From Magallana gigas (lineage: Eukaryota), in NCBI RefSeq assembly GCF_963853765.1, contig NC_088855.1, positions 49,600,001-49,664,000 of the forward strand: 64,000 bases of DNA. The letters are read 5' to 3'. The position numbers and the translations under genes were made by a program. The notes beneath the pieces are model-generated. The model was not told the origin of the DNA. It worked only from the letters and a program-made list of their open reading frames with translations, and made no database searches. Below, piece by piece: positions 15,955-43,600 of this stretch. Position 1 is the stretch's first letter; every line of letters starts with the position of its first letter.

Positions 15955-16189
15955 CCTGGGTTGACACCATCAGGAAATTATTAGCTGTAACTTAAGAAAC
16001 CCGGGTTGACACTGTCGGGTTAATAATGGTTCCCGGGTTGACACCATCGGGATTTAAAGAGTAGTTCCCGGGTTGACACCGTCGTGATTTAAGGAATGGT
16101 TCCCGGTTGACACCATCGGGATTTAAGGAATGGAACCTGGGTTGACACCATCAGGTTTAAATGCAGGGACCCGGGTTGACACCAGCGGG
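15955..16189. repeat. Seven copies of a 20-bp dyad core CCYGGGTTGACACCATCRGG, period mostly 32-35 bp
   Basis: Copies begin at about 15955, 16000, 16032, 16067, 16102, 16136 and 16170, separated by related AT-rich linkers. Confidence 0.85.
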
Positions 16190-17129: not shown

Positions 17130-18285
17130 GCATGTAACTGTGGAGACAGTACCAATGACATGTAACTGTATAGACAGTGCCAATGTCATATAATTAAAGA
17201 CTGTGTAAATGGCATGTAATTAGAGTCTGTCAGTGGTATGTAGCTACAGAGACTGTGCCAATGACATGTAACTGTATAGACAGTGCCAACAGCATGTAAC
17301 TGTAGAGATGGTGCCATTGACATGTAACTGTAGACGATGCCAATGATATATAACTGTAAAGACTGTGCTAATGACATGTAACTATAGACTGTGCCAATGA
17401 TATGTAACTGTGGAGACTGTGCCAATGGAATGTAACTATAGATTATGTCAATGACATGTAACTGTAAAGAAGATGCCAGTGACATGTAACTGTAGACGGT
17501 GTCAATGACGTGTAACTGTAAAGAAGATGCCAGTGACATGTAACTGTAGAGACTGCCAATGGCGTGTAACTGTAGACGGTGCAAATGATGTGTAAATGTA
17601 GGTACAGTGCCAATGGCATGTAGCTGTAGAGACTGCCAATGGCATGCAACTATAGACGGTGCAAATGATATGTAAATGTAGAGACTGTGTCAATGGCATG
17701 TAGCTGTAGAGACAATGACAGGTAGCCAATGGTGTGTAATTGTAGAGACTGTACCAATGGCATGTAACTAGATACTATCAGTGGTATGTAAAGGTAGAAA
17801 CAGTGGCAACAATTTGTAGCTGTAGAGATTGTTCCAATGACATGTAACTGTAGAGACGGTCCCAATGACATGTATTTGTAGAGATAATGTCAATGACATG
17901 CAACAGGAGAGGTGGTGCCGATGGCATGTAACTATAGACTGTGCCAATGACATGTAACTGTAGAGAGGGTGCCATTTGCATGTAATTGTAGAGGCAGTGT
18001 CAATGACATGTAACTGTAGATGTTGTACCATTGGCATGTAACTGTAGAGAGACTGTTTCACTGGCATGTAACAAGAGACTATAAGAAGCGTGTATAAGTA
18101 GAGGCAGTGCCAACAGCGTGTAGCTGTAGAGACTGTGCCAATGACAAGTAACTGTACTTATGTATTGACTGAGCCAATGGCATGAAACTTTAGAGACTGA
18201 GCCAATGACATGTAACTAGAGGCTGAGCCAATGACATGTAACTAGAGGCTGAGCCAATGGTATTTAACAGTAGAGACTTTGCTAA
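17130..18285. repeat. About 28-bp minisatellite (consensus CATGTAACTGTAGAGACTGTGCCAATGA), about 40 degenerate copies
   Basis: Tandem array seen directly; it explains the repetitive minus-strand ORFs at 17186-18067. Confidence 0.93.
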
Positions 18286-19843
18286 CGATTTCTGTTACAA
18301 CAAGTCGCAAGCCATGGATGGGGCTTAAAGCATTAGCACTTAAAATAAATGATTGGAATGGCACACATTATATTTACAAATTAAGAATTGAGTCATCATC
18401 TTGCGTAGCGTTTTATTAACAATTGTCTTATTTAAAATTCACTTGGTTTCAAACGCATACCTTAATTTAAAAATAATTTCATAATAAGGGTCAAAATTTT
18501 GGATAGAGTGAGCAATATTGAAAATATACATTTAAAATTGAGCAATCTGTTAGCAAAGCGTTAAAATATAGCATAATTTTTTTTTTTAAATTATCGTTCC
18601 ATACTGATAGGAGAAGATAAAGTTGACTTGATGTGTCTAATTTGACTGCATAGCGTATTAAGTAATGTATAAGTATTAAGTATTTACTTACTAGGAGACA
18701 AACTCGTTATGATGAGCTAACTAATTATAACAAAATTTTTGTACATTATTTATAACAAGATAATTCTCTTTCTATTAAGATATCGAATTTTAAAAGCTAT
18801 ATTAAAACCTCTTGATAACAATATTTTTCCTTTCCCCAAAAAGAGCTTTTGTATTAATTAACTTGATTGATAGAGATTTTATGGTTTCATGTTATAACAA
18901 AATAATTCTCTTGCTATTACGATTTATAGAATTTAAACTATATTCAAAAATTTCGTGGTACATGTAACAATATTTTTCCCTTTCCAAAAAAGACAATATT
19001 CTGCTTTTATATTAGTGGACTTGATTGATGGAGATTTTATATGATTTTAGTTATATAACTTCAGTATCAATCGAATTAGATTAAAACTATATGTTTTGAA
19101 TCTGCTGAGAAGCGGTGGCGGATGGATTCAGAACATATAATTTTGATTAGATTGTTCCAGTATCGCTTTAGAATTAGAGGCCCATGGGCTTCTTTGTTTT
19201 TCGAAGCATCGTCTGTTTACCCATACACTGTATATTGCTGACAGGCATTACCAATTTAATCGGATACAGAATAACATTTTATATTGTATTTTGATCTTGT
19301 GCAAATTATACAGCATTATGTAAATCTAAATATAGAAATATCATGTTCTTTCATGTTGCTTCCTATGGTTCTGTAACTTCTGTTCAAGTTTGAAAAAAAA
19401 TTAGCTGTCATGATTTGTAGAAGAATAATTTTGTTCTACGTATATTTTATGTCTACAAAAAATGGTTTGCTTCTTTATCCCCAGAGATTATGGATTTAAT
19501 TAATGAATATGAAAATTATTCATATTAGTTTAATTCTACTATTAAGTTACTAAATATTAAATTATGCACGTTTTGTCGTTTACAAAGCAGAAGTCAGTGT
19601 TTTCTTTCTTAATTGTAATTTTATTCATAAAGTCATATATATTGTCCTATTAAAAAATATACAAAAATCTGATGAAAAAGAATACGTATATTGTACTAAT
19701 AATTTGGTCTTTCATTCTCTGTGGTAAGGGGATAACTTCAAAATGTTGAATATATATATATAAAAACAATAGATTCTCCATCTGCCAAACAGTTTTTACC
19801 AAATAAAATTACGTAGTAATCTTAACTGTTTGCGAATCTTTAA

Positions 19844-20643: not shown

Positions 20644-21609
20644 ATCTTTTTCAAGGTGAAAATAAAACATCACTGATATTTTGGAGTTATTTCAAAGTGA
20701 TAAGTAAAACTTGCCTCCCCATTCTGCATTCTGATATGTATGGCAGGCCAAATTCACAAAAAAGAGCTAAACATAGTTTCACAGTCGATAAACTAGGTTT
20801 ATCAGCTGTTAACTATAGTTTACGGATCCTAAACTATAGTTAATGATTCGTTAACTATAGTTTACATCTGTGAAACTATATTTCACGAATGTAAACTAAA
20901 GTTTACGAATGATAATCATAGTTTATCGATCTGTAAAAAAAATAAACAATAGATTTTGCTGATAAATATAGATTCACATTTGTTAATTATTTGTTAATTA
21001 TACAATCGTAAACTATAGTTAAGAGTTGTTAATTATAGTTTCACAAATCGTGAAACTACATTAATCAGACAAATTCACAAAAATGAGCTAAACATAGTTT
21101 CACAGTCGATAAACTAGGTTTATCGACTGTTAACTATAGTTTACGGATTGAAAACTATAGTTAACGACGTTAATCTATATTTCACGTCTGTAAACAATAG
21201 TTAACGCGATAATCTATGTTTCACATCTGTTAACTATAATTAAAACTGAAAACAATCATTTGCGATTGTTAAACATAGTTTATCTGATAAATATAGTTTC
21301 ACCATTGTGAAACTATCTTTAACAGATAGGTAAAGTTAGCTACTAGTAACTGGCTACTAGTAACTGGCTACGAGAAGTAAGAAAACCTAGCTACTAGTAA
21401 CTGGCTACGAGATAAAATCAAAGTTGGCTACTCGTAACTGGCTACTAGTAACTGGCTTCGAGAAGTAAGAGAAGCTAGCTACTAGTAACTGGCTACGAGA
21501 TGAAAGAAACTTGGCTTCTAGTTACTTCTTACTGTCCATGTAAGAACACATACCTAGGATTTTCATTTGTGTTCTTAAGATGTACATTGCACTATATCAC
21601 TGTCAATTG

Positions 21610-24600
21610 TCAATATATCTCAAGTAGCTGTATATATAGATTGAAGATATATGCCAGACTTGCTAATATCAACATTATGTCAAGTCATCCACATAATATT
21701 ACGACACAATTACTCAGATATCCCTCTGTATGTAGTCAGCTACTTCTGAATTTCGTTACAAATATCTTTATTTTTTGTCTGTTTTTTAGCGGTTTTGTCA
21801 ATATATCTCAAGTAGCTGTATATTTAAATTGAAGATATATGCCAGACATGCTAATATCAGTATTCTATCAAGTCATTCACATAATATTACGACACAATTA
21901 CTCAGACATCTCTATTTATGTAGTCAGCTACTTGTGCATTTTGTTACAAATATCCGTATATTTTGGCGGTTTTGTCAATATATCTTAAGTAGCTGTATAT
22001 TTAAATTGAAGAAATATGCCAGATATGCTATTATCAACATTCCTTCAAGCCATCCACATAATATTACGACACACTTACTCAGATATCTCTCTTTATGTAG
22101 TCAGCTATTTGTACATTTTGTTACAAATATCTTTATTTTGTGGCGGGGTTGTCAATATATCTCAAGTAGCTGTATATTTAAATTAAAGAAATATGCCAGA
22201 CATGCTATTTTCAACATTTATTCAAGTCATCCACTTAATATTACGACACAATTACTCAGATATCTCTCTTTATGTAGTCAGCTATTTATGCATTTTGTTA
22301 CAAATATCCTTACATTTTGACGCTTTTGTCAATATATTGCAAGTAGCTGTATATTTAAACTGAAGATATATGCCTGACATGCTATTATCAACATTCCTTC
22401 AAGTCATCCACATAATATTACGACACAATTACTCAGATATCGCTCTTTATGTGGTCAGCTACTTGTGCATTTTTTACAAATATCCTTACATTTTGACGCT
22501 TTTGTCAATATATTGCAAGTAGCTGTATATTTAGATTGAAGATATGTGCCAGATATGCTATTATCAACATTCCTTCAAGTCATCCACATAATATTACGAC
22601 ATTATTACTCAGATATCGCTCTTTATGTGGTCAGCTACTTGCGCATTTTGTGATAAATATCCTCATATTTTGACGGTTTTGTCAATATATCTCAAGTAGC
22701 TGTATATTTAAACTGAAGATATATACCAGACATGCTATTATCAACATTCCTTCAAGTCATCTACATAATATTACGACATAATTACTCAGATATCTCTCTT
22801 TATGTAGTTAGCTACTTGTGCATTTTGTTACAAATATCGTTATTTTTTTACGGTTTCGTCAATATATTGCAAGTAGCTGTATATTTAGATTGAAGATATG
22901 TGCCAGATATGCTATTATCAACATTCCTTCAAGTCATCCACATAATATTACGACATAATTACTCAGATATCGCTCTTTATTTGGTCAGCTACTTGTGCAT
23001 TTTGTTACAAATATCTTTATATTTTGACGATTTTGTCAATATATTGCAAGTAGCTGTATATTTAAACTGAAGATATATGCCAGACATTGTATTATCAACA
23101 TTGCTTCAAGTCATCCACATAATATTACGACATAATTACTCAGATATCGTTCTTTATGTGGTCACCTACTTGCGCGTTTTGTTACAAATATCGTCATATT
23201 TTGGCGGTTTTGTCAATATATCTCAAGTAGCTGTATATTTAAACCGAAAATATATGTCAGACATGCTATTATCAACATTCCTTCAAGCCATTTACATAAT
23301 ATTTCGACACAATTACTCAGATATCTCTCTTTATGTGGTCAGCTACTTGCGCATTTTGTTACAAATATCCTTATATTTTGACGCTTTTGTCAATATATTG
23401 CAAGTAGCTGTATATTTAAACTGAAGATATATGCCAGACATTGTATTATCAACATTGCTTAAAGTCATCCGCATAATATTACGACACAATTACTCAGATA
23501 TTTCCCTTTATGTGGTCAGCTACTTGTGCATTTTGTTACAAATATCTTTATTTTTTGGCGGTTTTGTCAATATATCTCAAGTAGCTGTATATAGAATGCT
23601 GATATATACAAGTCATGTTCATTTTAATATTATATTAGGACATTCACATGATATTACGACATAATTACTTATATATCTTTCTCAATCTCATCAGCTACAA
23701 GTGCATTTTGTTATAAAAACTTCCATTTTCAACAGTTTAGTTGATAAACCTCAAGTAGCTGTGTAAAAAAATGAAGATATTTACTAGTGTGGTTGATTTA
23801 AACATTCTATAAGGTCACCAACATGATATTATGACACAATTACTTAGATATCCCTTTAAATCTCATCATCTTCTAAAACATTTTGTTAAAAATATTTCTC
23901 TTTTTTTTAGGATTTTGTCAACATTTTGTCAATATATCTCAAGTAGCTGTATATTTAAACCGAAAATATATGTCAGACATGCTATTATCAACATTCCTTC
24001 AAGCCATTTACATAATATTTCGACACAATTACTCAGATATCTCTCTTTATGTGGTCAGCTACTTGCGCATTTTGTTACAAATATCCTTATATTTTGACGC
24101 TTTTGTCAATATATTGCAAGTAGCTGTATATTTAAACTGAAGATATATGCCAGACATTGTATTATCAACATTGCTTAAAGTCATCCGCATAATATTACGA
24201 CACAATTACTCAGATATTTCCCTTTATGTGGTCAGCTACTTGCGCATTTTGTTACAAATATCCTTATATTTTGACGCTTTTGTCAATATATTGCAAGTAG
24301 CTGTATATTTAAACTGAAGATATATGCCAGACATTGTATTATCAACATTGCTTAAAGTCATCCGCATAATATTACGACACAATTACTCAGATATTTCCCT
24401 TTATGTGGTCAGCTACTTGTGCATTTTGTTACAAATATCTTTATTTTTTGGCGGTTTTGTCAATATATCTCAAGTAGCTGTATATAGAATGCTGATATAT
24501 ACAAGTCATGTTCATTTTAATATTATATTAGGACATTCACATGATATTACGACATAATTACTTATATATCTTTCTCAATCTCATCAGCTACAAGTGCATT

Positions 24601-24960
24601 TTGTTATAAAAACTTCCATTTTCAACAGTTTAGTTGATAAACCTCAAGTAGCTGTGTAAAAAAATGAAGATATTTACTAGTGTGGTTGATTTAAACATTC
24701 TATAAGGTCACCAACATGATATTATGACACAATTACTTAGATATCCCTTTAAATCTCATCATCTTCTAAAACATTTTGTTAAAAATATTTCTCTTTTTTT
24801 TAGGATTTTGTCAACATTTTTCAAGTAGCTTTATGTATAGACTGCTCATATTAACCAGTCTTGCTTATTTCAACATTCTAGTAGGTCATCCACATGATAT
24901 TACGGCACAACTACTCAGATATCACTCATAATCTCGTCAGCTACAACTGCATTTCTTTAC
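21610..24960 (+). repeat. 177-bp satellite array, left arm, about 19 monomers
   Basis: Equivalent positions at 21790, 21967, 22144, 22321 give a period of 177 (59 codons), which explains the recurrent same-frame ORFs. Confidence 0.93.
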
Positions 24961-25234
24961 AAATATCTTCATTTTTAACACTTTCCATGTTACTCAAGTT
25001 TCTGTACATAAAGATGTACATAAAGATTAAAGATTAAAGATATCTAGTTTTCAATTTAAATATTGAAGAACAAACAAAAAAAATTAAATTCATAAATATT
25101 GTAAAAATCTTATCTGTAAGGGGATGGGGGAGGATGGGGGGGGGGGGCAAAATTTTCTTATAATTTAAATTTCACTGGTTATTTTCTTTCATTCACTTCA
25201 TCTTTTTAAGTGCACACGAAAAACGTATGGGGAG

Positions 25235-27310
25235 AAATAAAGATATTTGTAACAAAATGCACAAGTAGCTGACTACATAAAAAGAGATATCTGAGTACCT
25301 GTGTCGTAATATTATGTGGATGACTTGAAGGAATGTTAATCTAGCAAGTATAGCATATATCTTCAATTTAAATATACAGCTACTTGAGATATATTGACAA
25401 AACCGCCAAAAAATGAGGATATTTGTAACAAAATGCACAAGTAGCGGACTAAATCAAGAAAGATATCTGAGATATTATGTCGTAATATTATGTGGATGAC
25501 TTTTAGAAATGTTGATAATAGCACGTCTGGCATATATCGTCCATTTAAATATACAGCTACTTGAGATATATTGACAAAACCGACAAAAAATAAAGATATT
25601 TGTAACAAAATGCACAAGTACCTGACTACATAAAGAGAGATATATGAGTAACTGTGTCGTAATATTATGTGGATGACTTGAAGGAATGATGATAATAGCA
25701 TGTCTGGCATATATCTTTAATCTATATATTCAGCTACTTAAGATATATAGACAAAACAGACAAAAAATAAAGATATTTGTAACGAAATGCACAAGTAGCT
25801 GACTACATAAAGAGCGATAACTGAGAAATTGTGTCGTAATATTATGTGGCTGACGTGAAGGAATGTTGATAATAGCATGTCTGTCATATATCTTCTATTT
25901 AAATATACAGCTACGTTGGATATATTGACAACCCCGCAAAAAATAAAGATATTTGTAACAAAATGCACAAGTAGCTGACTACATAAAGAGAGATATCTGA
26001 GTAATTGTGTCGTAATATTATGTGGATGACTTGACAGAATGTTGGTATTAGCATGTCTGGCATATATCTTCAATCTATATGTACAGCTACTTGAGATAGA
26101 TAGACAAAACAGCCAAAAAAGAATGATATTTGTAACAAAATGCACAAGTAGCTGACTACATAAAGAGAGATATCTGAGTAATTGTGTCGTAATATTATGT
26201 GGATGACTTAACAGAATGTTGATATTAGCATTCCGGCATATATCTTCAATCTATATGTACAGCTACTTGAGATATATTGACAAAACAGACAAAAAATCAA
26301 GATATTTATAACGAAATGCACAAGTAGCTGACTACATAAAGAGAGATATCTGAGTAATTGTGCCGTAATATTATGAGAATGACTTGACAGAATGTTGATA
26401 TTAGCATGTCTGGCATATATCTTCAATCTATATATTCAGCTACTAAAGATATATTCATAAAACCGCCAAAAAATAAAGATATTTGTAACAAAATGCACAA
26501 GTAGCTTACTACATAAAGGGAGATATCTGAGTAATTGTATCGTAATATTATGTGGATGACTTGACAGAATGTTGGTATTAGCATGTCTGGCATATATCTT
26601 CAATATATATATTCAGCTACTTGAGATATATAGACAAAACTGACAAAAAATAAAGATATTTGTAACGAAATGCACAAGTAGCTGACTACATAAAGAGAGA
26701 TATCTGAGTAATTATGTCGTAATATTATGTGGATGACTTGACAGAATGTTGATATTAGCATTCCGGCATATATCTTCAATCTATATATTCAGCTATTTGA
26801 GATATATAGACAAAACAGACAAAAAATAAAGATATTTGTAACGAAATGCACAAGTAGCTGACTATATAAAGAGAGATATCTGAGTAATTGTATCGTAATA
26901 TTTTGTGGATGACTTGACAGAATGTTGGTATTAGCATGTCTGACAAATGTCTTAAATATATTTGTACAGCTACTTGAGATATATAGACGAAACAGCAAAA
27001 AGATAAAGATATTTGTAACAAAATGCACAAGTAGCTGACTACATAAAGGGAGATATCTGAGTAATTGTGCCGTAATATTATGTGGATGATTTGACAGAAT
27101 GTTGATATCAGCATGTCTGGCATATATCTTTAATCTATATGTACAGCTACTTGAGATATATAGACAAAACAGACAAAAAATAAAGATATTTGTAACGAAA
27201 TGCACAAGTAGCTGACTACATAAAGAGAGATATCTGAGTAATTGTATCGTAATATTATGTGGATGACTTGACATAATGTTGATATTAGCATGTCTGACAT
27301 ATATCTTCAA
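25235..27310 (-). repeat. 177-bp satellite array, right arm, inverted, about 12 monomers
   Basis: Reverse complement of the left-arm monomer; minus-strand ORF translations mirror the plus-strand ones. Confidence 0.93.
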
Positions 27311-28504
27311 TCTATATATACATTGTACAATCTATATTATTGACAATTGGCAGTGATATAGTGCAATGTACATCTTAAGAACACAAATAGAAATCCTTGG
27401 TATGTGTTCTTACATTGACAGTAAGAAGTAACTAGAAGCCAAGTTTCTTTCATCTCGTAGCCAGTTACTAGTAGCTAGCTTTTCTTACTTCTTTTAGCCA
27501 GTTACTAGTAGCCAGTTACTAGTAGCCAACTTTTATTTAATCTCGTAGCCAGTTACTAGTAACTAGCTTTTCTTAGTTCTCGTAGCCAGTTACTAGTAGC
27601 CAGTTACTAGTAGCTAACTTTACCTATCTATGATTAACAACTCTAAACTATAGTTCACGAATGCAAATTGTATCTGATAAATATAGTTTCACAATCGTGA
27701 AACTATATTTATCAACTCTAAACTATAGTTTACGAATGCAAACTATAGTTTACAGATGTGAATCTATATTTATCAGCAAAATCGTTGTTAACGTGCATTT
27801 CCTGACAGAAAAACATAGATTTGTATTCGTAAACTATAGTTTACAGATGTGAAATATAGATTAACATCGGTAACTATAGTTTAGGATCCGTAAACTATAG
27901 TTAACAGCCGATAAACCTAGTTTATCGACTATGAAACTATGTTTTGCTAATTTATGTGAATTTGGCGTGTTTTAGATTTGTAAACCGTAGTTTACTGATC
28001 ATAAAACCCTATTTATCAGATAAACTATGTTAAACAACCGCAAATGATTGTTTTCAGTGTTAACTATAGTTTACAGGTGTGAAACATAGATTATCGCGTT
28101 AACTATAGTTTACAGATGTGAAATATAGATTAACGTCGGTAACTATAGTTTACGATCCGTAAACTATAGTTAACAGTCGATAAACCTAGTTTATCGACTG
28201 TGAAACTATGTTTAGCTCATTTTTGTGAATTTGGCGTGCCATAGATATATGACTAACAGTTATAGATAGATACACAATGTAGGTATGAAAAAATGTCATT
28301 CATATCTCTGGTGTAATTTCAATGTTAACGTAATAGAACAGAAAAGATGGTCATAACAAACTATTTTTCCATGATTGCGCATAGTTAAGTTATAATGTAC
28401 GTTTAGATTCTCTCTAAAACGGAGGGGGTGGCTTAATAATCATAGATCCGCCCGCCATCTGCAGTTACTCTCAAGAGGGGTTCCGATGAGAAAAAATGCA
28501 ACGC

Positions 28505-28615: not shown

Positions 28616-31600
28616 ATGGCAACACAGAATACTAACCCTGCTGCCCAAACAACAGGAAGGAGCAAGGACATGTCCAGCTCTTCAAATCAAGCTCGAGATA
28701 ACCACTCGGTCAGCAAACGGTATGTCATATAACAACGATTTTCATAAAACGGTGTAAAAGATAAATGTTATCAGTTTGTTGAAATATTGAAATAAGTGAG
28801 AAACAGGCAAAATATTACCAATGAACATGGTGAAAGCAAATTAATAAAATTTCTAGATATGTCTCAAATCCAGTACAGTTTCCCAGTGCGGCAATTTTGT
28901 AACCCGGTTACACAAGGATGAGAAATGATGATCCTTATGTAGAGTCAAAAAAGAATCAGGTATATCTTAGATAAGGTAAATCATTTAAGAAAAACTTATA
29001 CAAATTTGTATAAGAGAGGGAAGACCATTGTTTTAGAGAAAATCTCCGAAACAGAGTTCCAAGGGTTACGAGGGTAACAGACCCTTGTTTCTATATAAAT
29101 CTCTGTTCTGAAACAGGGTTACAAGGGTTACAGACCCTCGTTTCTATACTAAGCTCTGTTCTGAAACAGGGTTACAAGGGTTACGAGGGTTACAGACCCT
29201 TGTTTCTATAGTAAGCTCTGTTCTGAAACAGGGTTACAAGGGTTACAGACCCTTATTTATATACTAAGCTCTGTTCTGAAACAGGGTTACAAGGGTTACG
29301 AGGGTTACAGACCCTTGTTTCTATAGTAAGCTCTGTTCTGAAACAGGGTTACAAGGGTTACGAGGGTTACAGACCCTTATTTCTATATAAATCTCTGTTC
29401 TGAAACAAGGTTACAAGGGTTACGAGGGTTACAGACCCTTGTGTCTATATAAATCTCTGTTCTGAAACAGGGTTACAAGGGTTACGAGGGTTACAGACCC
29501 TTATTTCTATAGTAAGCTCTGTTCTGAAACAGGGTTACAAGGGTTACGAGGGTTACAGACCCTTGTTCATATACTAAGCTCTGTTCTGAAACAGGGTTAC
29601 AAGGGTTACGAGGGTTACAGACCCTTGTGTCTATATAAATCTCTGTTCTGAAACAGGGTTACAAGGGTTACGAGGGTTACAGACCCTTATTTCTATAGTA
29701 GGCTCTGTTCTGAAACAGGGTTACAAGGGTTACGAGGGTTACAGACCCTTGTTCATATACTAAGCTCTGTTCTGAAACAGGGTTACAAGGGTTACGAGGG
29801 TTACAGACCCTTGTTTCTATAGTAAGCTCTGTTCTGAAACAGGGTTACAAGGGTTACGAGGGTTACAGACCCTTGTTTATATACTAAGCTATGCTATTAG
29901 ACAGGATTACAAGGGTTATGAGGGTAACAGACCTTTTTTTCTATACATATCTATGCTCTAAGACAGGGTTACAGGGATTATAGCAGACCATGGTATCTTA
30001 TTGAATTGTATCTATCTGAACCATTGAAAGAGTTACTAACTTTTGATTCATACTGTCCATTTCATTTCATTTCACTTAGCATTTTACAGTAAAGTCTATG
30101 TGTAGCATCCGATTTGTATGATTTGAATTTCAAACAAATATGTGGTAGCGAAAATTTCCATAAACTTGGAATGTTAATTAACATATACTACATATTTTTT
30201 TTTGTTGACAAATTGAAAATATTTAATTTTCAACAAAGATAACATTTCATAATTATATCATCATCTGAGTTCATATCACTTTCATTGATTAATCTCTATA
30301 AATATTCTTTGACTCTTCTAAATTTTCTTTTTCATGAAGTAAAATTCAAACTGTTATAAAAAAGAATCCAACATGAATTTTAATTAGTGTCTCTACTTTA
30401 TCTCTTCAATATTTTAGATTCCAATATTAAAAAAAAAAATACCTGCTTAAAATTTCATTACTTTTCATTGCATTTATATATAAATAATTGCTAAATGGTT
30501 AAATTCAATGAGTCCTTGTTCTGCTGTGACCTTTCTCCATTGTTTTTATGTTTCTTCAGTATTAGTATACTGTGTATAGATGGTTAATCAAAAGTGTCTA
30601 TAATTGATATCTTTTTTCATCAGAATTCTTTGATACAACCACTTTGAGTCTCCTTTTGCCCACTTTTAAAGATTGATATGTCAAAGTGTTTTGCAGTCAG
30701 CTTTTTGTTGATATCTTTTATCCATTAACTATCATTGCACCCTACATGTGACAAAATACAATAGAAATAATTGTATCAAAGAAGAAACATGTGCTGTATA
30801 TTTTATTATACATAATTGCTCGGCATGCCACATAACATACAAACACAACAGAATCAGTTAAATTAAAATTGTTGAATAAATAGAATTGTTTAAAATACAT
30901 TTTAAATATAATAAATGCTCTTCCAATCAACAATAACTGAAATATAGATAAATGATTGTTGACATACACATGTTAACATTACGAGTAACAATAACTCGTA
31001 CATAGTGAACTGTAAATAAAAAATGAACATCAACAATATTAAATCCAATCAACATGAACAGAATCATAAGCGGTTAATATGATATGTATTCTGATAATGA
31101 TCTGTTCATGTTAATTCATTTAGTAAATCTAAAAAAAATCATAACTTTTTTGATGGTTACAAACAGAATTTTTCACAAGAGGTCATAATTCCAGAATAAG
31201 GGGCAACACTCAGTGGCAATGTCTGCAGTTCCAGGGATTTCCTCCGATGGTTTTGTACGCCTGTACGGAGATCCCTGCACAACTCCGATGGTACCACTGC
31301 TGGCATCCATCACAGCAAAGCCAAAGGAGGCCTCTTCTCCCTTTCTTTCCACAAGTGGCACAAAGGTCCTTAAAAAAAGAAACCATACTTTACTAATTTG
31401 GCACACTCTCATCTAAATCAGCATTTAAATCAAATCCTACGTTTTTCACGTAGTGAATTCCCCATATACACACATTCCTATATTTTTATAACTATACTGA
31501 GTACAAGACTAAAATGAATAAAATGGATAACAACATTTTCTGATATGCCAATTAAACTCGATCTGCTTTATTATATACTTATGTATGGAATAAGAAATCA

Positions 31601-34600
31601 TTCTTTGGGGTGACAAGTTAAGTCCAGAGTGTGGTCAAATCCAATAAATTAAGCCTGAAGGACTTTATGCTAGATTCGACCATGCTTTAACCAAAACTAT
31701 CACCTCATAATAATGACACCTCATTACTTGGTTATATTTCCAAGTTCTTCACTTTAAAACAACATTTCAAAAGCACTATGATTTTATGTAGCACATGCAA
31801 AGTATTACTATGCGGCGCAGCCAATACAAATTCTTGCTTATATTATAGGACATGCCCATTTTGTGTTGCTCATCTTTTATAAAATTATTGGGCTATAGGC
31901 TTCAAAATTGATTTGTAATGTTATCACTAACAAAGACAGTTGAAATGGAAATATTGTATAATTAAGCTTTTAGAATGTGTTTTCATTAAATAGTGATCTC
32001 TCACATCAAATTGATCTAAACATTCATTATGTTAGTGGAAGCATTAGCATACTTACACTCATCGGTACCCTCTGAACAGACTCCAGAGGCAGTCTGGGTG
32101 GGGAGGGGAGGGGCTCATCTGCTTGATGTCCTTCTTCTATTGGGGTGCCCATGTCCACTGACATATTCCCCATCATTTCAATGAATGGTGGGGGTGGAAA
32201 GTCATTGGAGATTGACCCATTTAGTGATGGTAGAGGTGGTGGTGGTGGAGGAAGGTCACCCATGTCAAAGGAATCCTGTTCCGTGTCCGGGGTATCTACT
32301 ACAGAGAATTATTATATTCGTTAAATTTTCTTCAGAGTTTAACTATTATGAAGATCAATAGCTCATGTTACTTCAATATTAAAGTGTCACTACTAGATTT
32401 GGTGTCTCTAATCAATTTGCATTGTTATCATTCCATTTAAAAGAATTGTCTTGATGATTTAATTTTGAGCCCAACTGTATATAATTATAATTTCAAATCA
32501 TGTTACCATTGTCCTCGATCTCTGGGAAGGTTGTTTCCCTCACTCTGCAGGTTTCTTCAACTTCAACGTCAGATTCTACAAAAACAAAAAAAATGGATAT
32601 CAATGATCTGTACACTCTGTTTTTAGTCAAAAAAAGAGCAGCACATTAAGGAGGATTGATGGTCAACAAATTAACCATCAGATCTACCTTAAACTTTCAC
32701 ATCTGACAATATGACCATAAACTAATATTGAGAAAAGTGAAAAAGTCGAATATTTATGCTTTCAAATTTGAGCATAATGCCATATATCATACTGAGAGAA
32801 GGTAAATATAACCTAAAAACGGACACTATTCTCCAGCCCTCTGAACTAAGAGTAAAAGATTGGGGTCTATTCTGAACAGAGTACCACACTAGATAACTGA
32901 ACAATTGGGTTTCTTTTTTAAGTCATGAATCAATTGCAAAAACACTTGATTGAGACAAATGATTATAATTTCAAATCATGTTACCATTGTCCTGGATCTC
33001 TGGGAAGGTTGTTTCCCTAACTCTGGTTTCTTCCACTTCATCGTCAGATTCTACAAAAACAAAAAAAATGGATATCAATGACTTGTACATGCTTTGCTTT
33101 TAGTAAAAAAATGTGCAATATCGAGGAGTTGTATGAAAAATCTCAAAATTATTTTCTATTCAATAAAATATAATTCCTCTGAAGGAGCTCATCATAAGAA
33201 CAAATGCATGAAACTTAAGTGTACACTACTTCTTATAAGATCATCATAAGGAAAATTGAGACTGCTCTATAATATGGTTTGTGTATCTCTTTTAAATTAC
33301 AAGCTGACCTTGATGTAATATATCACACTATAAAGCAAACAATGAATCTCTGTTAGGAATTACCTGAGGTAAGGCATCGAATGGTGTCTTCAGATAAAAC
33401 ACTCATGGGGATTTTCGCGACTTTCCTCACTTTCCCCATAATCCTCCCTGATTTGTTGATCTCTGCCCCAGGCGTGTTTTTTAGGACAGCAACCACTTCA
33501 GAAACTGCAATGTTCAAAGCTGCTGCTGCTCTGGCCTTGTCCAGCAGGACGGAGTCCTCCAAACATCTGAGGATGTCTTTTTTCTCCTAGAAAATTGAAA
33601 TATAATGTAAGAGAAGGTGGATATGTTTGGATAAATATGGCAGATATAATCATTACTTTTAAAGTGTATTTTATGACCTTTTAATATTTATTAATAAAGA
33701 CATGAACTCACATGTTGGCACAACCCTCCAAGTTCTTTCAACATTCGATTTGCTGCTTTGGATGGTTGGTGGTTCAAAGTTGTATTTTCGTGGTAGGGCA
33801 GCAACACATCCTTCACATATGCCCTGACTTGCTGCCACAAATGCCCTTTCTCTGTAACCTCCAGCATCTAAATAAAAAAATTAATGCATTAATTTTCTGT
33901 CTATTACTAGTACTGGTATATATTTTCTCATGTTCAGCTTTTAATGAGGCCGACTTTAATTTTCACTGCCTGTGGTTTTGCCTTATCTAATGAAATACAG
34001 TGTATTTATACTTTTTTTTATGAATTTTTTCCTATATCACTCATAAAATTAAAAGTAAGTAACAAAATACAGATAAAAATACTTCGATTTGGAAAGGGAA
34101 AATGTTCTTTCAAATGATTTTTCCAGTGTATGGTAGGTGAGCATTGCCATTGTGTTTTTGACATTATGATAAAAAGATTAAGCTTCGAAGTACGTTAAAG
34201 GAAATAACACAACAAAATATGTAAACACATATTTCAATTTGAGGAAAATCACTTGTTATGTATGCAGCTAAGGCCATTGCAATTTTTTTCTTTGTTTAGC
34301 GTCCACCCAAAACTCAAAAACCTATCCTGGCCTATATAAGCATAATGTTATCTTGTAGATTTTATATAAATTAACTGGAATACAAATTAAAATTTTTTAT
34401 ATCAATTCAACAGGTTTTTCATTACCTTTTTGCAAATAATCAGAGGGAGAGCAATGCCCTCTGCAACTCTGATGTCCAGTCCTTCCAGATAAGACAGCAA
34501 TCCCGATGTTACGTTTGCAATCTCCTCCGCTTCAATTTCGCTGGCCATCAACTTAAGGGAAATGAAAGCAGAGGAGGCTGCAATTGCTGCCTTAGTAAGA

Positions 34601-37600
34601 ACTGCAAAGGTGCCTGGTTGGGGGTTGGCCTTGGGTCTTAAAAAGACTATGACGAACAGCCTGGAGTGATACCTTCAAAATTAAAAGTATTTCATTAGTA
34701 AGAGATTACCGGTATTAAAATTGTCCCAATAACAATTTACCTGGCCAATGTTTTACATCATTTTCTTGTTTTTTGTTCAACTATGATATAAACCTTCAAA
34801 ACTGTTTATTCCATGGAAGGCAGGAGCCTTATTTTTGAAAACCATTGAAGGCCTTAGCAAAATGCTGACATTTTTTAGGAAAGTTATGGTTCATCATTTT
34901 ATTGTATTTGGGCGACAGTTTTTATTTACCGGTACTTATGATGCATAATATCTTGAATAGGACTGGCCAATCATTATAACTATTTACCAACACTATACAG
35001 TATCAACTATTTTTTAAAGCCCTCCCAAATTTCAAATAATCTCTATAAATTATTGTCATTCATTGAAAAAAAATAGTAGTTTTTGACAGATAGGACATGC
35101 TTACTTTTCCATCTGATGGATGTCGAAGTTGGCTGTCACAAGGCACGCTGTCTGAGGGAACTGGTGTCCTCCCGATTTTCCCCTTGCTGCACCATTGGCC
35201 AAGTCCACAGCAACCTGTTTGACATCTGCTACTGAAGTAGGGTCATCCCATACAAAGGGAAGGGTGGACTTAGCAAAAGCATCCGTCAGATAGGTTAGGG
35301 TATCTCTGAAAATGATACATTGAAGTCAATATTTAAGGTTACATTCAAAACAAAAGCTTGAATAAATACTTGAACGACCTCAATGGTTAATGCATCAAGT
35401 AATAATGGCATGGAAGTTGGATATATCCATGTACTTATCACTTTACCAGCTACAATTGAAAACTAAAGGATAAAAAATCCTAATCAACATTTTACTACCG
35501 GTATTTTTTTGTCTTTGGTTTTTTTATATATATTTTTTTAAGAACTAGTTACCAGCAATAACTATAACAAAGTAGAAAAAAAATCATGTTCCAAGTTTTT
35601 GTGATTATTAGTGATTATTAGGTCATTCTGTTTTATATCATATATTGTTAGAGTCAGATGTGTAAAAGGTTTTTCTAATTACCTGCTGGTGATGGATTCA
35701 TCCAAGGAAAGCCCACTGAAGAGTCCTGCACACTGTGCAACCAAAGTCTTTCCTACTTTAGGTGGTCCAAATAGAAGGGGGAGGTTAAAATGTCCCAACT
35801 TGGCCAAGATGTCTCTGCGAAGGACGAAAAAAAGTTTTAGTCAATTGCATACAGTAAATGTATACCATATTGTCTTAAGGGGCATGGTCTTGATTTTGGT
35901 CAAATTCTATTTTTTCTGTTTACTTACAATGCTTTAGGAATGCATTCCCAATATTCAAATGAAATTTGAAAGTCAGTTGTAGAATTATAAGCAGGATACA
36001 TGGCTCACAGTTTTTGTCAAAGCTCATATGCCCTGTTTTTGTTTACATTATATGTTCAATATACCTGTATAAAATCTAGAAAATCATTTTCAAGCTAATT
36101 TGCATATCTTCTTAATAAATTTGAACATAAAAAAACAGGTCCTTATGTTTGACACATTGATTTTAGGTGTAAAACTGGAATTTTAACTTCAACATTAAAA
36201 AGTTAAAGCTTTGTTTACATAGCAAAGAAATGTAAGCTTTGTAACTTTCAGAATGACACTTAAATGTTGGTTGCCTATTAAAATGCCTTTCGAAGCGTAG
36301 TACAAAAATCAAAATTGATAAAATAATTTTTGACCAAAATCGTCACCATGCCCCTTTACGAAAAATTATTGTCATTGAATGTAAAAGCCACATTTCCAAA
36401 TCAAGCATTTCAATGTTTCATGTATCTTCTTTAATATATTTATCTGGTTTGCTTCAGATAAGATTAACACACATCTCTGGATAAAACCTGTTATTGTTTT
36501 ACAGACACCATCTTTGATCTTAACAATTAAAGCAAATGCTTGTGTCCTTGACACCCCCCCCCCACACACTTTATAATAAATCTGTCAACAGACAGTAACA
36601 AATCATATACGAATAAATGTAAATCCTGACTTAATGTACAACAATATTTTTTCTGTTTTAAGGTTTAAGGTTGACTTTATTAAACCTGATATCTTATAAG
36701 ATGAAAAAGCTGTCATTACTAGATTTACACATTCTCAAGTTTTTAATTACCTGTAGTTTGCCATCATCAGCATGCAACTCAAAGAGAGCAGGGCTGGGAC
36801 AAAGTTGTCTCTTAGTTGTGTGTGTGCCAACTCTATGAACCTTGATAAAGGATTAAGGCCAGGAGGTTCGGCAAACTGTCTGGCCATTCCTTGGGGTGGG
36901 CAGCCAGGCCATCCTGGTATCCACATGAATGGGTTGGAAGCTGGTGGAATCTTAAAATAAATGGATTGAATTACTATTGGTTTTAGGAGGCTACATGCTA
37001 TTTCTAGTAGTTTTTTAAAATTATAAATTTTATAAAAAATGAGATACACCTTTATTTATATATTGACATTTCTGTACAATCTGGAGTTGAACCATTCGCT
37101 AGCTTGCATGTGAATTTTAAATTTTTTAATAATTTTAACATTTTGTGTTTGTAGATCATCTTTCAGTCACGTAAATAACCCCCAAAATTGACAAAACTGA
37201 AATTTCCGCAACCTTATTGCGCGTCATTTTATAGCCCTAAAACACCCCAAAACATATTCCAAGAGATGATTTAATTGTCTATTGTTGAAAATGTAGGAGT
37301 AGTTTGAGGAAGGAGGTTTTTTGGTGGAAAAAAGTCATTTTATACCAATCATTTGACCCCAAGACTACAGGTACTAGAGAATTTTTGAAACCTCTTTACA
37401 AAACAACATGCCAAACTATATTGAACTCTAGGAGTTCAGTTTGCTGGTTTATAAGATGTAAGAGCAGTTTGAGAATTCGTCCTCTATTTCGTCCAAGATA
37501 CAGAATTTACACGTGCGCTCAGTGGGAGGTATATCATCAAGTCCACATGCTTTAGAATTGCCAATTAGTATACTTACTGATCAAGAATACCCTGATCACT

Positions 37601-40600
37601 TACATACATGTATATGTATTCAAAATTAGGAAAGTCATATTTTGGAGGTCCAGGATCATGCATGTTCAGGCAAGTTTGATTCATTTCAATATGATAAATA
37701 CTTAAAAAAAGAAAGTACAGTGTATTTAGTTTTTGAGCAATATCAATGCGATGAATCAGTTTTCTTCCATTATGAGTTTTGAAAGGGGGTGGGGGAGAAT
37801 TTTTTTACTATAACCTACCACTCTTCTGTTGGAAGGACTTATCAACAAGTTATGAAACCGTGCAGTTGCTTTATACCCTCTCCTGCTCTTTCGCACCAAA
37901 TCGAAAACTTCATTAAGCATGTTAAGTAACTTTTGAAATTTCTGCCAATGTATTAAATTTGGATGTTTTTGTAATTTTTGCTTTTTTGTGTATATTGGTT
38001 TTCTTTGCCTCATTTTCTGTAGAATTTCTGTTGTACAGGCCTTATCAGTAGGGCGTATTGTAGTTTGTTTGGTGTTTGTTTATAACAAATGACGTAATAC
38101 AATATATATAAGATATAAAGTTTTGATTTACATCATTGATGTTATTACAATAGTTAAACACTGATTCATACCAGTTTATATTCAGTAGGTCATCATAATT
38201 TGGACCTTGATAATATATGCCATATTGTAGTTTCTTCGATGAAATGCTAGTTGTTTATATATTATGTTTATTTTTAAGAAAAATTTCTATAATTAGTAAC
38301 AAGCGAGTATTACATAATTAGGTTCATATACAATTACATTTTTTGACTTTGTTAGAATCATTTGTTTGTACTAAGTAAATACAAGTGCACATAAAATTTT
38401 GTAAAATTTGAACATTACCGGTACTTATATTCATGCAGTCTTTGTAAAAGATGCTTATATATATATAATGAATTAATTATTTCCAGATACATTAAATATT
38501 TACATTTAATCTCACTGAAAGAAGAAATAATTTCATTAAATTAGTATCCTTTGCTCTTTCTGTGTTACTGGTTACTTTCAAATTACCCAGTACTAAATTG
38601 ATTTCAATTATTTCTCTTAATCTAAGCTTACCTAAATCCATTTATATTCCTGATCAGCATTCTTGTTTATAAGATATATGCATGGAAAGAATTATTCAAA
38701 AGCAAAAAATATAAAAATTAAAAAAAATAAAAAAAAACCTTAAGTTTATGCCATGTTACTAGCTAGGGTAGTTATCGGTAATCAAATTGTCTGTAAGAAA
38801 TATTTAATTTGTCTCTTGAATGGATTGATCAAGCCAATCAGCAACTTTTTTTTTTAATGGAGGCTGTGTAATTTATCTGGACATTATACAGTGTTAAATT
38901 AGCATTTTTAAAGTTTTCACTGTGCAATATTATCTTATGAAGATTGGGACCAATGTTATATTTAGATCTGGTGACTTAATAGTTAAAGGAATGATAAATA
39001 TAATTTTTTTAATTGGTATTGATAATCCATGTAAGCTCTTAGAAAAACTTTTTGATTCTACTTCTTTACTGTTGTGAAATATGGGGAGTGGATCTCTCAT
39101 TGAAAGATATTTCACTTATCGAAAAATTTGATGTAAAATTTCTTGGATTACATTGCAAAGCATCTAATGCTGGTTGTTTGGCAGAATTAAACAGGTTACC
39201 ACTTTGGTCTAAAATCTCATTCTCAAGCATTAAATATTGGAATCACTTGATAACGTCTTATTCTTTGGCATTTAAATTATATCTGGGATTGATCAATTCC
39301 AATTCCTGGACTAAGAAAATTTATGGCATCCTAGATAATTTGGGATTCTCAAACATTAGTAATTATAAAAGCACAATTCAACACTTTTTACCAAACATAA
39401 AGCAAAGATGATCATTGCAATTGACCAACTGTATCCAAGTAGATATATGAGCAATCATCAAAAATTTTTAGTTCAGAAAAACTTTCATTTTTTCAAAAAT
39501 TATATATGAGAAAAAGAAGTCCTTATGTTGATATACATTATAGAGATCCTCTATTAGTAGAATAAGATTAAGTGCACATAAACTTGCAATAGAAAGTGGT
39601 AGATTTAATGCCACATTTAGGAATGAAAGATATTGTAATGCTTGTAAAACTGCTGCAATTGAAGATGAAACTCATTTTCTTTTTCAATGTAAAGCCTATT
39701 CTCATCTAAGGAACAGGTATTTTAGTAATTTTTAAAAGATAATTAAAATAAATATTGCCAATAACTTGCACAAAGAAAGATACATTTACATGTATGTTTA
39801 AATAGTGAAATACATACTATTCTAAAAGTTACTGTTATTAATAAATTCATTAACTTTTGAACACAGATATCAATTAGTCTAAGGAAATGTTAAACTGATA
39901 TATATAGATCAGTAAAAATATATATACTGTACATGCATGTAGTTATTGTAAACATACAATGATGTTCCTATATATCCATTGGGCCTTAATTGCCAATTAT
40001 TGTAATTGAGTTTGTGCCAATAAAATATTTGTATTTGTATTTATCATATTTAAAAAAAAATTGAAGCTAATAATTGCATGTCAATGCAACCGGCCAGAAC
40101 CCTTTACTGAAAACAGCAGGGCATTATAAATATTTTTAATCGTTGGATAAAAATTAGTTTTATAATATGTGATGAAAAAAAAATCTAATTTTCCTTACCT
40201 TAAGATATATTGCATTAATGGCTCCAGGTTTGTTGTGACCTATCTCACAGACTGGTGACAATGATGATAGATGCAAATTGTACAGAGGATAAGTCTATGA
40301 AGTTCTCTGAATATCTTTCATCTTGCAAGTTGAAAGCCATTGATGTGTACATCTCCATCACAAGATAATTCACGTAATGCTTTTGATGAAATAATTTTCA
40401 CACCTTTACATTGTCTTCTTCATCTCTGCTTTGTTCTGCTCAACGAATCCGTAATATACAAACCCGTGTTAGTTCATATAAAATGGATTAGCATTCTTTC
40501 ATTTAGCAAGTTAAAAGCTATTATGTGTACATCTCCTTCACAGGTAAATTCAGGTAATGCTTCTGAGGGTCAACCAATTTCACACCTTAAGAGAATACCC

Positions 40601-43600
40601 GCTTTTGTTCTGCTGACCATGCAACTCGCAACAAATACATGTATACACAACACCTGTATTTTCATTTTTAAAAGAATTGAGAAAGTGCATTAAATATTTT
40701 ATTGAGTTTTGATTGAAGATGTAAGGAAATAAACTTAATTTATTTAACAATTATTATTATGAACAGTTATATTAATTTTTTAATTTTAATTGCACAAATT
40801 ATAAATGATAGCCTAATTTAAAGTCTGTTATCTTGTGTTCGATACCTCTGTTTACCCTGTTTCAGAACAGAGATTTATATAGAAACAAGGGTCTGTAACC
40901 CTCGAAACCCTTGTAACCCTGTTTCAGAACAGAGCTTAGTATAGAAACAAGGGTCTGTAACCCTTGTTTCTATTGTAACCCTTTTTCAAAACAGAGATTT
41001 ATATAGACACAAGGGTCTGTAACCCTCGTTATATTGAAACAAGGGTCTGTAACCCTCGTAACCCTTGTAACCCTGTTTCAGAACAGAGATTTATATAGAA
41101 ACAAGGGTCTGTAACCCTCGTAACCCTTGTAACCCTGTTTCAGAACAGAGCTTAGTATAGAAACAAGGGTCTGTAACCCTCGTTATATTGAAACAAGAGT
41201 CTGTAACCCTTGTAACCCTTGTAACCCTGTTTCAGAACAGAGCTTAGTATAGAAACAAGGGTTTGTAACCCTCGTTATATTGAAACAAGGGTCTGTAACC
41301 CTCGTAACCCTGTTTCAGACCAGAGATTAGTATAGAGACATGGGTTAGTTAGTATATACAGAATTTCAAGCATGGTTGAAGTTAAAATTAGGAAGGGTAA
41401 ATATCATATTGGTTTGGTTTCGTTTGTAACTGGGTTACAGAATTGCTGCACTGGGAAACTGTACTGTATTCTTGCCATATATGAAAATTTCACATGGCTC
41501 CTATGATAAAAACATGTAATTTGCCATTAACTTTTTTCCAATTTAATGATAATGATTTTTTAAAATTATAACAGTTATCTATTTCATGTCTACAAGTTGA
41601 TTTTTTATTAAACAAGCTCAATTTTTTTTTCAGACTTCAACAAGAACTCATGACTTTATTGGTAAGTAACAATGTAACAATCATGATATTTTTTTTCGCA
41701 ATCATTTCTCTCTGTCTTCTCACGGGCCGCCAATAAGCCGTTAAATGTAGGGGATGAGAGAGAGAGAGAGAGATCGAGAAATGTACACTATCTACGTGTG
41801 TATATCATTATAGATAGATAGATAGGGTATATATCTCTCTCTTTGGAATTCCCCTATAGTATAGCCTATTTATAACGGCTTATTGATAAAAATTCAGAGG
41901 CCTGTCAGGGCATAATATCCCTAGCATGCGGGTCCTGTAAAAGGACCCACTTCCAATTGAAAATTGACTGTTTTATTCAAAATCTAATTAAAAATTCCAA
42001 AAATAACTGTTTCGTATTGTTTTATAAAAGATAGGATGCTGATTTTGATGCTATACTGACTCGAGTGAAACATCCTTATATGTGTCAATTAAAATATTAG
42101 AGTGTTCTGTTATAAAAGTATGGTTTACTATGATTAAAGCATTAATTTAATGATTAAACGCGTAATATGCAAATGAAAATCAAAAAAACTGTATAGAATT
42201 TTTGGTTTTTTTGCTAATTTGCATTGAGCCTTATTTGTTAAACTATTTTCCCAAAAAAGCAATATTTTGACAAATTCCCAATTGAAAGGGTACAGGACCC
42301 AGTCCCAAAAAGGGTCAATTAAACCCTTCCTTTGGTCTTCTCTGATTGATATACTTTGTTGCCCAAATGACTTGTGATGTAAAATACAATTAATATTGCC
42401 CAAGCATTGAAAAGTGAATTCTTCATGATGACATTTGAGAGCTGTACTGACCACCGGATATGCAACAAAAAATGGACACGCTCTCTTATCCTTTGTTAAA
42501 AAGATTTAAAATGACAGCATATTGATAATGATAAGAAATGAATGCTTGAACAGAGAATGTAGATTTTAGGTGTTTTTATATGTATGAGTAATGACATATC
42601 AAGAGATATGATTAAAGAAAATTAACTTTTAGTGGAATGAAGAGTTCTTTATAGTATAAAGAGCTCTTAGACATTAGTCTTAATCAAATCTGTAGGGATG
42701 TAGACAATAGTACACCTTGTCAGCTACCGGTATATGACATTTTATAATGTTCTTGATTTTAACAAGTTTTGACAGGTCAGTAATGCATTGGTTATCTTCT
42801 TATGAATACTCAAAACATGGTTCATTCATACACCATTGTAATTTGTTTTTAAGGCTTTAATCAGGTATAGGTGCATCTACACAGTTATCATAAACATGAT
42901 ATCAAAGGTTCCATTTTCTGGTTATTTGGTGAATGTGAAAATGGGGCAAGAAAATTGTGAAAAATAAAGTGTGACTGTGTCACTACCTCAGTATGCAACA
43001 CACCTAAGAAGAAGCGGTTTGTTCCCGTTTTGCACACATTTGAAAATTAGGAATCGAAAAAATGTGTGCGAAACGGGAATTTGACCAGGTGAGATAATTG
43101 CTTAATTGCTATAGTCTATATCACAATTCCCGCGAGGGCAATTGACAATAAAAGAAAAAATACATATCTACTCGCAATTGAAATTAACATGTATTTTATG
43201 TTACAAATTATATAACTTGCATAAAAGCACATTTACATAATAATTGACATCCATATTCAAGAATTTGATTTCAAGCATCAATTTGGTCATGAACAATTTC
43301 ATTATTTTTTTTTAAAAAGAAAGATTATTGCAAAAATGTTGAATATGTAGCGCCTTTGTTTAACTTAATGCCTATAGGAAGTACATGTACATGCTAAAAG
43401 TTTGAAGAGAAAATATCTATATGTTAATATTTAATTATAATTGCTTTTGCTGACATAAATGGAAGAAATGTGTCTTGTGAAAACGCTGCTAAATATTTTT
43501 CATTTATGTTGTGTTATATCTTGAATAATTGAAGAAATTAGACAAACTGTATGATGATAAATAGGCAATTTTATATGCATGCTTCAAAAACTGTAAAGAT

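Follow-up and report, generated by a model that had tools for sequence, protein, structure and literature searches.

A TA-flanked element in an intron of oyster UBE2C carries a predicted Cch/SaPI-Rep-type helicase gene between mirrored repeat arrays

Introduction

Among bacterial replicative islands, the Rep protein of SaPI initiates replication by means of a C-terminal winged helix. This domain binds penta- or hexanucleotide iterons that follow rep a short way downstream and face opposite ways across the AT-rich region of the SaPI origin (PMC9371898). Here we analyse a 64,000-nucleotide stretch of the oyster Magallana gigas (contig NC_088855.1, positions 49,600,001 to 49,664,000, forward strand; "the window", position 1 being its first letter), in which a 12.6-kb element with terminal inverted repeats (TIRs) occupies intron 1 of UBE2C. 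The element carries one spliced antisense gene between mirrored repeat arrays, and the predicted product of this gene resembles SaPI Rep and the SCCmec helicase Cch. A preliminary description of the sequence had proposed an undescribed TIR family with its own ATPase/helicase or, alternatively, a Pack-type element that had captured such a gene.

The likeness to SaPI Rep and Cch lies in the identical order of Walker A, Walker B and sensor-1, and in hexamer repeats that lie a short way downstream of the gene and are oppositely directed on its two sides (PMC9371898). However, the oyster gene is found in a eukaryote and has spliceosomal introns conserved across bivalves, its arrays hold tens to more than 100 repeats at both ends of a TIR element instead of the 6-12 iterons of a single origin, the element has no primase partner, integrase or serine recombinase, the oyster protein bears a PHD finger, and sequence similarity is near the detection limit.

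IS630-Tc1-mariner and pogo elements share with the oyster element the TA next to both ends (with the boundary at 28876) and the CAGT tips. In contrast, they are 1-3 kb long and encode a DD(E/D) transposase with a paired-like domain, which is absent from the reading frames of the 12.6-kb oyster element; large subterminal tandem arrays and a conserved helicase gene are further differences. Because the defining transposase is absent, the element is placed outside Tc1/mariner.

Foldback transposons (FB, Galileo, Tetris), which are members of the MULE or P superfamilies, have inverted arms of tandem repeats, mostly non-coding copies and duplications of 7-9 bp; none is known to carry a Cch-like helicase. 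The inverted ends of the oyster element also consist largely of tandem repeats, but its arms differ in the copy number of a 62-bp unit, and unique spacers of 85-200 bp, unlike each other at the two ends, separate TIR from array. Its duplication is 2 bp, not 7-9 bp, and its arrays stop short of the tips. Helitron/Helentron Rep-Hel proteins and AcademH also combine a mobile element with a helicase gene; theirs are superfamily 1 (SF1, Pif1-like) or superfamily 2 (SF2, RecQ-like) enzymes with a HUH nuclease or DDE transposase, whereas the predicted fold of the oyster family is Cch/MCM/superfamily 3 (SF3)-like and comes with no nuclease. IstB, MuB and TnsC are likewise P-loop ATPases encoded by TIR elements, but every known one comes with a DDE transposase gene, and their place is in the DnaC/initiator clade. 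Literature searches returned no description of a eukaryotic transposon with a DUF927/Cch-type or SF3 helicase.

Results

Ends of the element and the host intron

The left TIR starts at 28876, opening CAGTTTCCCAGTGC, and the right TIR ends at 41461, with 34 of 37 positions identical between them. The 21-nt TIR tip occurs twice in the window, at these two ends (0 occurrences expected), and a TA adjoins each TIR on its outer side (28874-28875 and 41462-41463). In UBE2C, 28719 is the last position of exon 1 and 41634 the first of exon 2, which makes intron 1 12,914 bp long; without the element and one TA, 326 bp would be left. The 12.6-kb unit is a clean single insertion into a short intron, and the TIRs, flanking TAs, mirrored 62-bp arrays and intron lengths given in the preliminary description were all recovered. 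The heptamer GGGTTAC is concentrated at the ends: 58 of its 60 occurrences in the window, where about 4 are expected, fall within the two ends of the element, one of them in each TIR. The features of the element outside its gene are as follows.

28874-28875, unstranded: putative target-site duplication TA, left, directly outside the repeat
28876-28912, plus strand: left TIR, 37 bp, with one GGGTTAC on the minus strand
29115-29980, plus strand: left subterminal array, 14 x 62 bp, 3' of the gene; 12 of the 14 units hold three GGGTTAC in 9-bp phase
29981-31211, minus strand: AT-rich spacer (26% GC) and probable 3' untranslated region, from stop codon to array, judged by composition and contig coverage
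37452-39732, unstranded: nested non-long-terminal-repeat (non-LTR) retrotransposon fragments, with C-terminal tails of reverse transcriptase on both strands and a weak zf-RVT match
40854-41311, minus strand: right subterminal array, about 7 x 62 bp, inverted, with 18 GGGTTAC on the minus strand
41425-41461, minus strand: right TIR, inverted match to the left TIR
41462-41463, unstranded: TA flanking the right end

The retrotransposon fragments lie between the 5' end of the gene and the right array. Both flanks of the element read CAG-TA-CAG, and the repeat could start 5 nt further out (CAGTACAGTTTCCC). This outward form aligns with the tips of relatives in Mya and Mytilus (CAGTGGTTACAGT...) and would leave TC and TA as the flanking dinucleotides. 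The boundary at 28876 is nevertheless favoured, because a contig of flank depth in two DNA runs leaves the window sequence exactly after 28875. Within the element, no inner inverted-repeat pair marking a nested gene-bearing element and no inner duplication were found, and an 8-bp hAT-type duplication is absent at its ends.

The spliced gene

The preliminary description had counted one antisense gene of 10-11 exons between the arrays. We modelled 10 exons on the minus strand, all with GT-AG introns, which encode an intact 556-aa frame running from 36926 to a stop codon at 31212. All exons are on the minus strand.

36751-36926, minus strand: exon 1 as modelled, N-terminal domain with a W-x-P-x-W-P-G motif
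35683-35814, minus strand: exon 2, Walker A (GPPKVGKT)
35105-35305, minus strand: exon 3, Walker B (VWDDP) and sensor-1/motif C (VTANF)
34426-34672, minus strand: exon 4, helical lid after the ATPase core, with the conserved arginine in YHSR
33712-33867, minus strand: exon 5; an RNA contig spans the entire exon and extends past it
33364-33586, minus strand: exon 6, C-terminal helix-turn-helix-like segment (weak helix-turn-helix matches; Mya 48% over 35 aa)
32985-33050, minus strand: exon 7, acidic mini-exon (RNA joints 33364 to 33050 and 32985 to 32575)
32507-32575, minus strand: exon 8, acidic mini-exon, tandem duplicate of exon 7 (RNA joint 32985 to 32575)
32057-32298, minus strand: exon 9, proline-rich linker, in frame, GT-AG
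31212-31368, minus strand: exon 10, PHD finger (PF00628, E = 2.3e-9) and stop codon

RNA contigs from one transcriptome run contain the joints 33364-33050 and 32985-32575, which read CT..AC on the plus strand and hence GT-AG on the minus strand. Exons 5 and 6 lie whole inside longer RNA contigs, and RNA contigs also span 30653-31448; no RNA joints were seen for the proline-rich exon 9 and the PHD exon 10, both of which are in frame. The two mini-exons of 66 and 69 nt stem from a tandem duplication (32481-32635 and 32959-33110, spacing about 476 bp), and the RNA joints use both. Exon boundaries around the Walker-B exon are common to oyster, Mercenaria and Mytilus.

Because homology to relatives continues to 36965, about 13 codons upstream of the first methionine, the helicase gene may lack a 5' exon in our model; when longer bivalve homologues were used to search the window with their N-terminal regions, an upstream exon did not come to light. 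The frame 36375-36584 was considered as an exon and rejected, since exon 1 joins exon 2 directly by homology and phase. The first intron also contains a 72-nt inverted pair (35850-35921 and 36312-36383, 71% complementary, 390 nt apart), which may be a small nested TIR element.

In no frame on either strand of the element was a transposase, recombinase or nuclease family matched (Pfam, NCBIfam, PHROGs), which bears out the earlier remark that no DDE transposase is visible. Primase or polymerase domains were likewise found neither in the frames of the element nor in the bivalve homologues.

Predicted structure of the protein

An exhaustive HMMER search with the Walker-B exon as query against 1.84 billion representatives returned 29 proteins in all, nearly all of them fragments. 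Every named relative was an uncharacterised bivalve protein (Mytilus, Mercenaria, Ruditapes, Mya), with several paralogues per genome, and no Pfam domain was found in these bivalve relatives. The PHD finger was present in the oyster copy only among the homologues examined; there the helicase part is followed by an acidic, proline-rich linker and then the finger. Language-model features placed the oyster exon (0.91) and a distant homologue, P0022 (0.97), with DUF927 clusters. The Pfam profile DUF927 (PF06048) matched P0022 with E = 2e-4 and 21.6 bits, the gathering cut-off being 22.6, and did not match the oyster exons or seven bivalve proteins.

A first AlphaFold model, of a Ruditapes fragment with a shallow alignment, was discarded (predicted local distance difference test, pLDDT, 54.6). 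The model used here was that of the 436-aa Mya orthologue, built from a 38-row family alignment that included the oyster exons; it reached a pLDDT of 85-94 over residues 70-300 and fell below 50 at the C-terminus. The matches of exon 6 to helix-turn-helix domains were weak. Foldseek with the Mya model gave SCCmec helicase Cch (5dgk, E = 7e-7) as the best match, followed by AAV Rep40 and by polyomavirus, poxvirus D5/E5 and SaPI5 primase-helicases. In the ESM Atlas, the nearest shapes were DUF927 proteins and phage primase-helicases (TM 0.60-0.65). The model has the N-terminal domain and MCM-like ATPase core that make up the Cch/SaPI Rep fold. The Walker A lysine, the Walker B acidic pair, the sensor-1 asparagine and a later arginine (YHSR) are found in oyster and conserved across the family alignment; this arginine would be the arginine finger.

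On account of the Foldseek matches, the ESM Atlas neighbours, the language-model features and the conserved motifs, the modelled protein is assigned by fold to the self-loading Cch/SaPI-Rep-type initiator helicases, known from staphylococcal genomic islands (DUF927 clade, MCM-like), a predicted relationship that is visible by structure only. The AAA+ ATPase-PHD protein of the preliminary description therefore keeps its P-loop ATPase and, in oyster, its PHD finger, and the generic AAA+ label gives way to the Cch/SaPI-Rep-type fold. A MuB/TnsC-like role in target selection had also been suggested; the 50 best structural matches include no IstB, MuB or TnsC, all being replicative helicases, and the element has no transposase gene, which speaks against that role.

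Relatives in other bivalves

In Mya arenaria (locus L013), the orthologue lies between inverted arrays of a 176-bp unit, at 1-511 (where the array runs off the locus) and 13653-19181, and each unit contains five GGTTAC in 9-bp phase. This element is antisense in an HSP70-family gene whose annotation extends over all 23 kb of the locus, a position that mirrors the antisense, intronic place of the oyster element in UBE2C. One Mytilus locus (L014) has an array of 108 copies of a 61-bp unit downstream of the gene; this unit is in register with the oyster unit, a TATATAGAAA box and three phased TGTnnCC being common to both. Another Mytilus locus (L003) has a GGTTAC array upstream of the gene. Orientation agrees among oyster, Mya and Mytilus L003: on the upstream side of the gene the motif is GGTTAC, on the downstream side GTAACC. 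The right ends of the Mya element and of Mytilus L014 read ...CCACTG followed by TA, and CAGTGGTTACA is the putative tip form of the Mya and Mytilus elements. The array nearest the 3' end of the gene starts 0.5-1.2 kb downstream, past an AT-rich spacer of 26-28% GC.

As judged from these sequences, the conserved parts of the family are short CAG-type TIRs next to TA, mirrored GGTTAC arrays in 9-bp phase and a single spliced gene. The undescribed TIR family proposed earlier is borne out to the extent that gene and mirrored arrays occur together in oyster and Mya, and one array, on the expected side and with matching orientation relative to the gene, at each of the two Mytilus loci. Longer copies with a second reading frame had been suggested as a check; in the Mya and Mytilus loci compared by tblastx, no further conserved gene turned up. 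Because the association of gene and array, the phase, the orientation and the CAG/TA ends recur in Mya and Mytilus, the helicase gene is read here as part of the element and not as captured. The bivalve orders concerned split hundreds of millions of years ago. One would not expect homologous arrays, their phase and their orientation to persist around a captured passenger over three orders; the Pack-type alternative is therefore disfavoured. Nor does the cargo look like a captured host-gene fragment, being intact at 556 aa and accompanied by homologous arrays in Mya and Mytilus.

Long inverted pairs around the homologues at Mytilus L003 and L004/L005 were considered as TIRs and rejected, as they proved to be copies of a transfer RNA-type short interspersed element (SINE). 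These pairs (L003, 10309-10575 and 23110-23377; L005, 33-353 and 15306-15624) stand 12-15 kb apart and mimic long TIRs; in mollusc genomes they are a pitfall for automatic TIR detection.

Copy number and signs of mobility

Depth in the DNA runs is given as k-mer depth of contigs, which is not a copy number. The contig covering 29861-31110 had about 3.3 times flank depth in two DNA runs (195.7 against 60.2, and 26.7 against 5.4-8.4). The summed depth of exons 5 and 6 was 4-7 times that of the flank, with variant letters present, and the subterminal region 28900-29099 reached about 25 times flank depth. As a mobile element would lead one to expect, members of the family are multi-copy and often broken, the copy at L006 being cut by a retrotransposon, and they do not share one genomic context: the oyster element occupies a UBE2C intron, that of Mya an HSP70-family gene. 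A search of the protein collection with an array-derived reading frame yielded no other oyster copies, and the one match of the TIR tip in Joint Genome Institute (JGI) metagenome contigs was rejected as a chance match inside a bacterial gene.

An alternative contig of flank depth in two DNA runs follows the UBE2C intron to 28875, passes to 29226-29249 and then continues from 29107 onward. The contig suggests an allele from which the left TIR and about 350 bp are missing, and hints that the element varies structurally at its left end. Three intronic stretches (31700-32100, 32500-32700 and 33900-34100) had summed contig depths of 60-250 times flank in the DNA runs, and many loose contig ends were found at 31945, 32646-32660 and 32693-32697; the high-depth stretches look like high-copy small repeats, of the MITE (miniature inverted-repeat transposable element) or SINE type, nested in the element.

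Distant lineages

A eukaryote contig (L002) holds a 45%-identical homologue in an 11.9-kb element between inverted 31-bp arrays. These arrays have a different sub-repeat with 10- and 21-bp spacing, and the element shows an exact 8-bp duplication, ATATTTTT. At another locus (L010), a remnant of the helicase family lies 200 bp from hAT transposase fragments, namely degraded hAT frames at 7675-9692 (DUF4371, a ZBED5-type RNase-like domain and the hAT dimerisation domain) upstream of the remnant on the same strand. A module of helicase plus arrays is thus found on backbones with differing insertion signatures, which argues that the insertion enzyme is separate from the module.

Within the L002 element and opposite its helicase gene, a 168-aa frame on the minus strand (8969-9475) contains a tesmin/TSO1-like CXC cysteine cluster (E = 0.005), perhaps another accessory that binds chromatin or DNA, located where the oyster element has its PHD finger. 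The same contig carries a separate 3.6-kb TIR element (15003-18682) with 49-bp repeats and a frame with a DNCSGQNKN motif (weak DUF7869 match), as well as, upstream, a 160-bp derivative of it (62-221) that consists of its two ends only.

Other features of the window

A 7.5-kb foldback with nested repeat modules lies just upstream of UBE2C (20741-28241) and is devoid of the GGTTAC motif. Tandem Repeats Finder reported arrays of 20-41 bp at 28057-28209, and a run of N occupies 8047-8222.

Discussion

The reading we prefer, to which we give somewhat better than even chances, is that of a low-copy family of bivalve elements made up of an initiator helicase and iteron-like arrays and probably inserted by a TA-targeting transposase acting in trans. 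In the proposed mechanism, the C-terminal helix-turn-helix part of the helicase would recognise the GGTTAC repeats as iterons, in the manner of SaPI Rep, and thereby provide an origin-like or end-marking function; in oyster the PHD finger might tether the helicase to chromatin. The bivalve layout parallels that of SaPI on a larger scale, with a hexamer in phase, an AT-rich spacer before the array nearest the 3' end of the gene, opposed orientation at the two ends and a helix-turn-helix-like segment in exon 6. A Tc1/mariner-type DDE transposase would most simply account for insertion, with its TA duplication and CAG tips; supply in trans is invoked because the element encodes none. Array binding, replication, the source of the transposase and mobility are what we infer here. 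The element is a candidate for a new transposon type, as first proposed, and might have a mobility mechanism of its own; its TA/CAG ends agree with mobilisation in trans of the ordinary Tc1/mariner type.

Several points weigh against the preferred reading. Arrays of transposase-binding sites would look identical to iterons, and the helicase module may ride on ordinary transposons of different superfamilies, as at L002 and L010. The sequence links to Cch and DUF927 are weak, with Pfam under its gathering score; a profile search of the Protein Data Bank (PDB) sequences gave Walker-A or chance matches only, and the C-terminal part expected to hold the winged helix is modelled at low confidence. 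Five more homologue loci, from molluscs or others, have no arrays within 10 kb. Within oyster, one copy with both ends was covered and the joint mobility of ends and gene is read from contig depth ratios, and a clean empty-site allele was not seen in the DNA-run contigs, in which the alternative left-junction contig enters array-like sequence.

The strongest competing explanation, although we consider it unlikely, is an ordinary non-autonomous element of the Tc1/mariner or pogo type, whose arrays are multiplied transposase-binding sites and whose helicase-PHD gene is a long-retained passenger, its function being host-like or selfish and having no part in transposing or replicating the element. 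The TA flanks and CAGT tips are the Tc1/mariner signature, and the lack of an encoded transposase is as this explanation requires. The greater depth of the ends (about 25 times flank at 28900-29099, against about 3 times in the interior) suggests shorter relatives with the same ends, and the other target duplication of the distant lineage would be expected if the backbone were swappable. However, it would be unexpected for a passenger to stay with homologous arrays in one orientation in Ostreida, Myida and Mytilida, no autonomous partner is known, and the nearest structural relatives of the protein are initiators whose hexamer iterons, which they bind, follow shortly downstream of the initiator gene itself, the layout seen here.

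Improbable in our judgement is a self-sufficient replicon-transposon, in which the helicase would load at the iteron arrays and drive episomal or insertion-coupled replication without a DDE transposase. Its appeal is that the helicase gene is the only conserved coding capacity in the Mya and Mytilus loci compared, that the predicted fold is that of a self-loading initiator, and that opposed repeats on two sides with an AT-rich spacer by the gene recall SaPI origins (PMC9371898). Yet cutting and joining DNA is beyond a helicase alone, searches for domains yielded no nuclease, primase, polymerase or recombinase, the TA duplication implies staggered cleavage by a transposase-like enzyme, and no extrachromosomal form was observed.

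Coincidence, with a host gene caught between two independent foldback or MITE insertions or placed secondarily inside a short foldback, we hold to be very improbable: foldback repeats and satellite-bearing MITEs are common in oyster (the pattern of foldbacks or MITEs with internal satellites has been described, PMC8268682; a 7.5-kb foldback lies just upstream in the window) and the inverted pairs at the L003 and L005 homologues proved to be SINE copies, but the whole 12.6-kb unit is a single insertion in a 326-bp intron with matching TIRs and TA, there is no inner repeat pair or inner duplication, and motif, phase and orientation recur around the orthologue in Mya and, in Mytilus, beside two copies on the side where they would be expected.

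Going further than the preferred reading of an initiator helicase with iteron-like arrays and a transposase in trans, the family could be a bivalve counterpart of bacterial replicative islands, in which the helicase reads the mirrored GGTTAC arrays and replicates the element, and the PHD finger reads host chromatin. We regard this extension as doubtful. Replication would be extrachromosomal or coupled to insertion, and the element would probably descend from a prokaryotic or viral replicon that acquired introns. If true, cut-and-paste elements, Helitron, Crypton and Polinton would be joined by a fifth mechanistic class among the DNA mobile elements of eukaryotes. If the helicase binds the arrays, this would be the first eukaryotic mobile element built on a Cch/SaPI-Rep-type origin module, and it would form a bridge between bacterial replicative islands and animal transposons.

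For oyster genetics, the point of interest is that intron 1 of UBE2C, a cell-cycle gene, harbours a large antisense insertion that is transcribed. The GGTTAC arrays offer an explanation for some of the satellite-like arrays scattered in bivalve genomes, and an unannotated family of bivalve proteins is now given a predicted fold and a likely activity. Eukaryotic DNA transposons are classed by their transposase, and this bivalve family keeps a helicase and arrays without one; if the helicase binds the arrays, it would offer a testable case of a replicon module combining with a transposon backbone.

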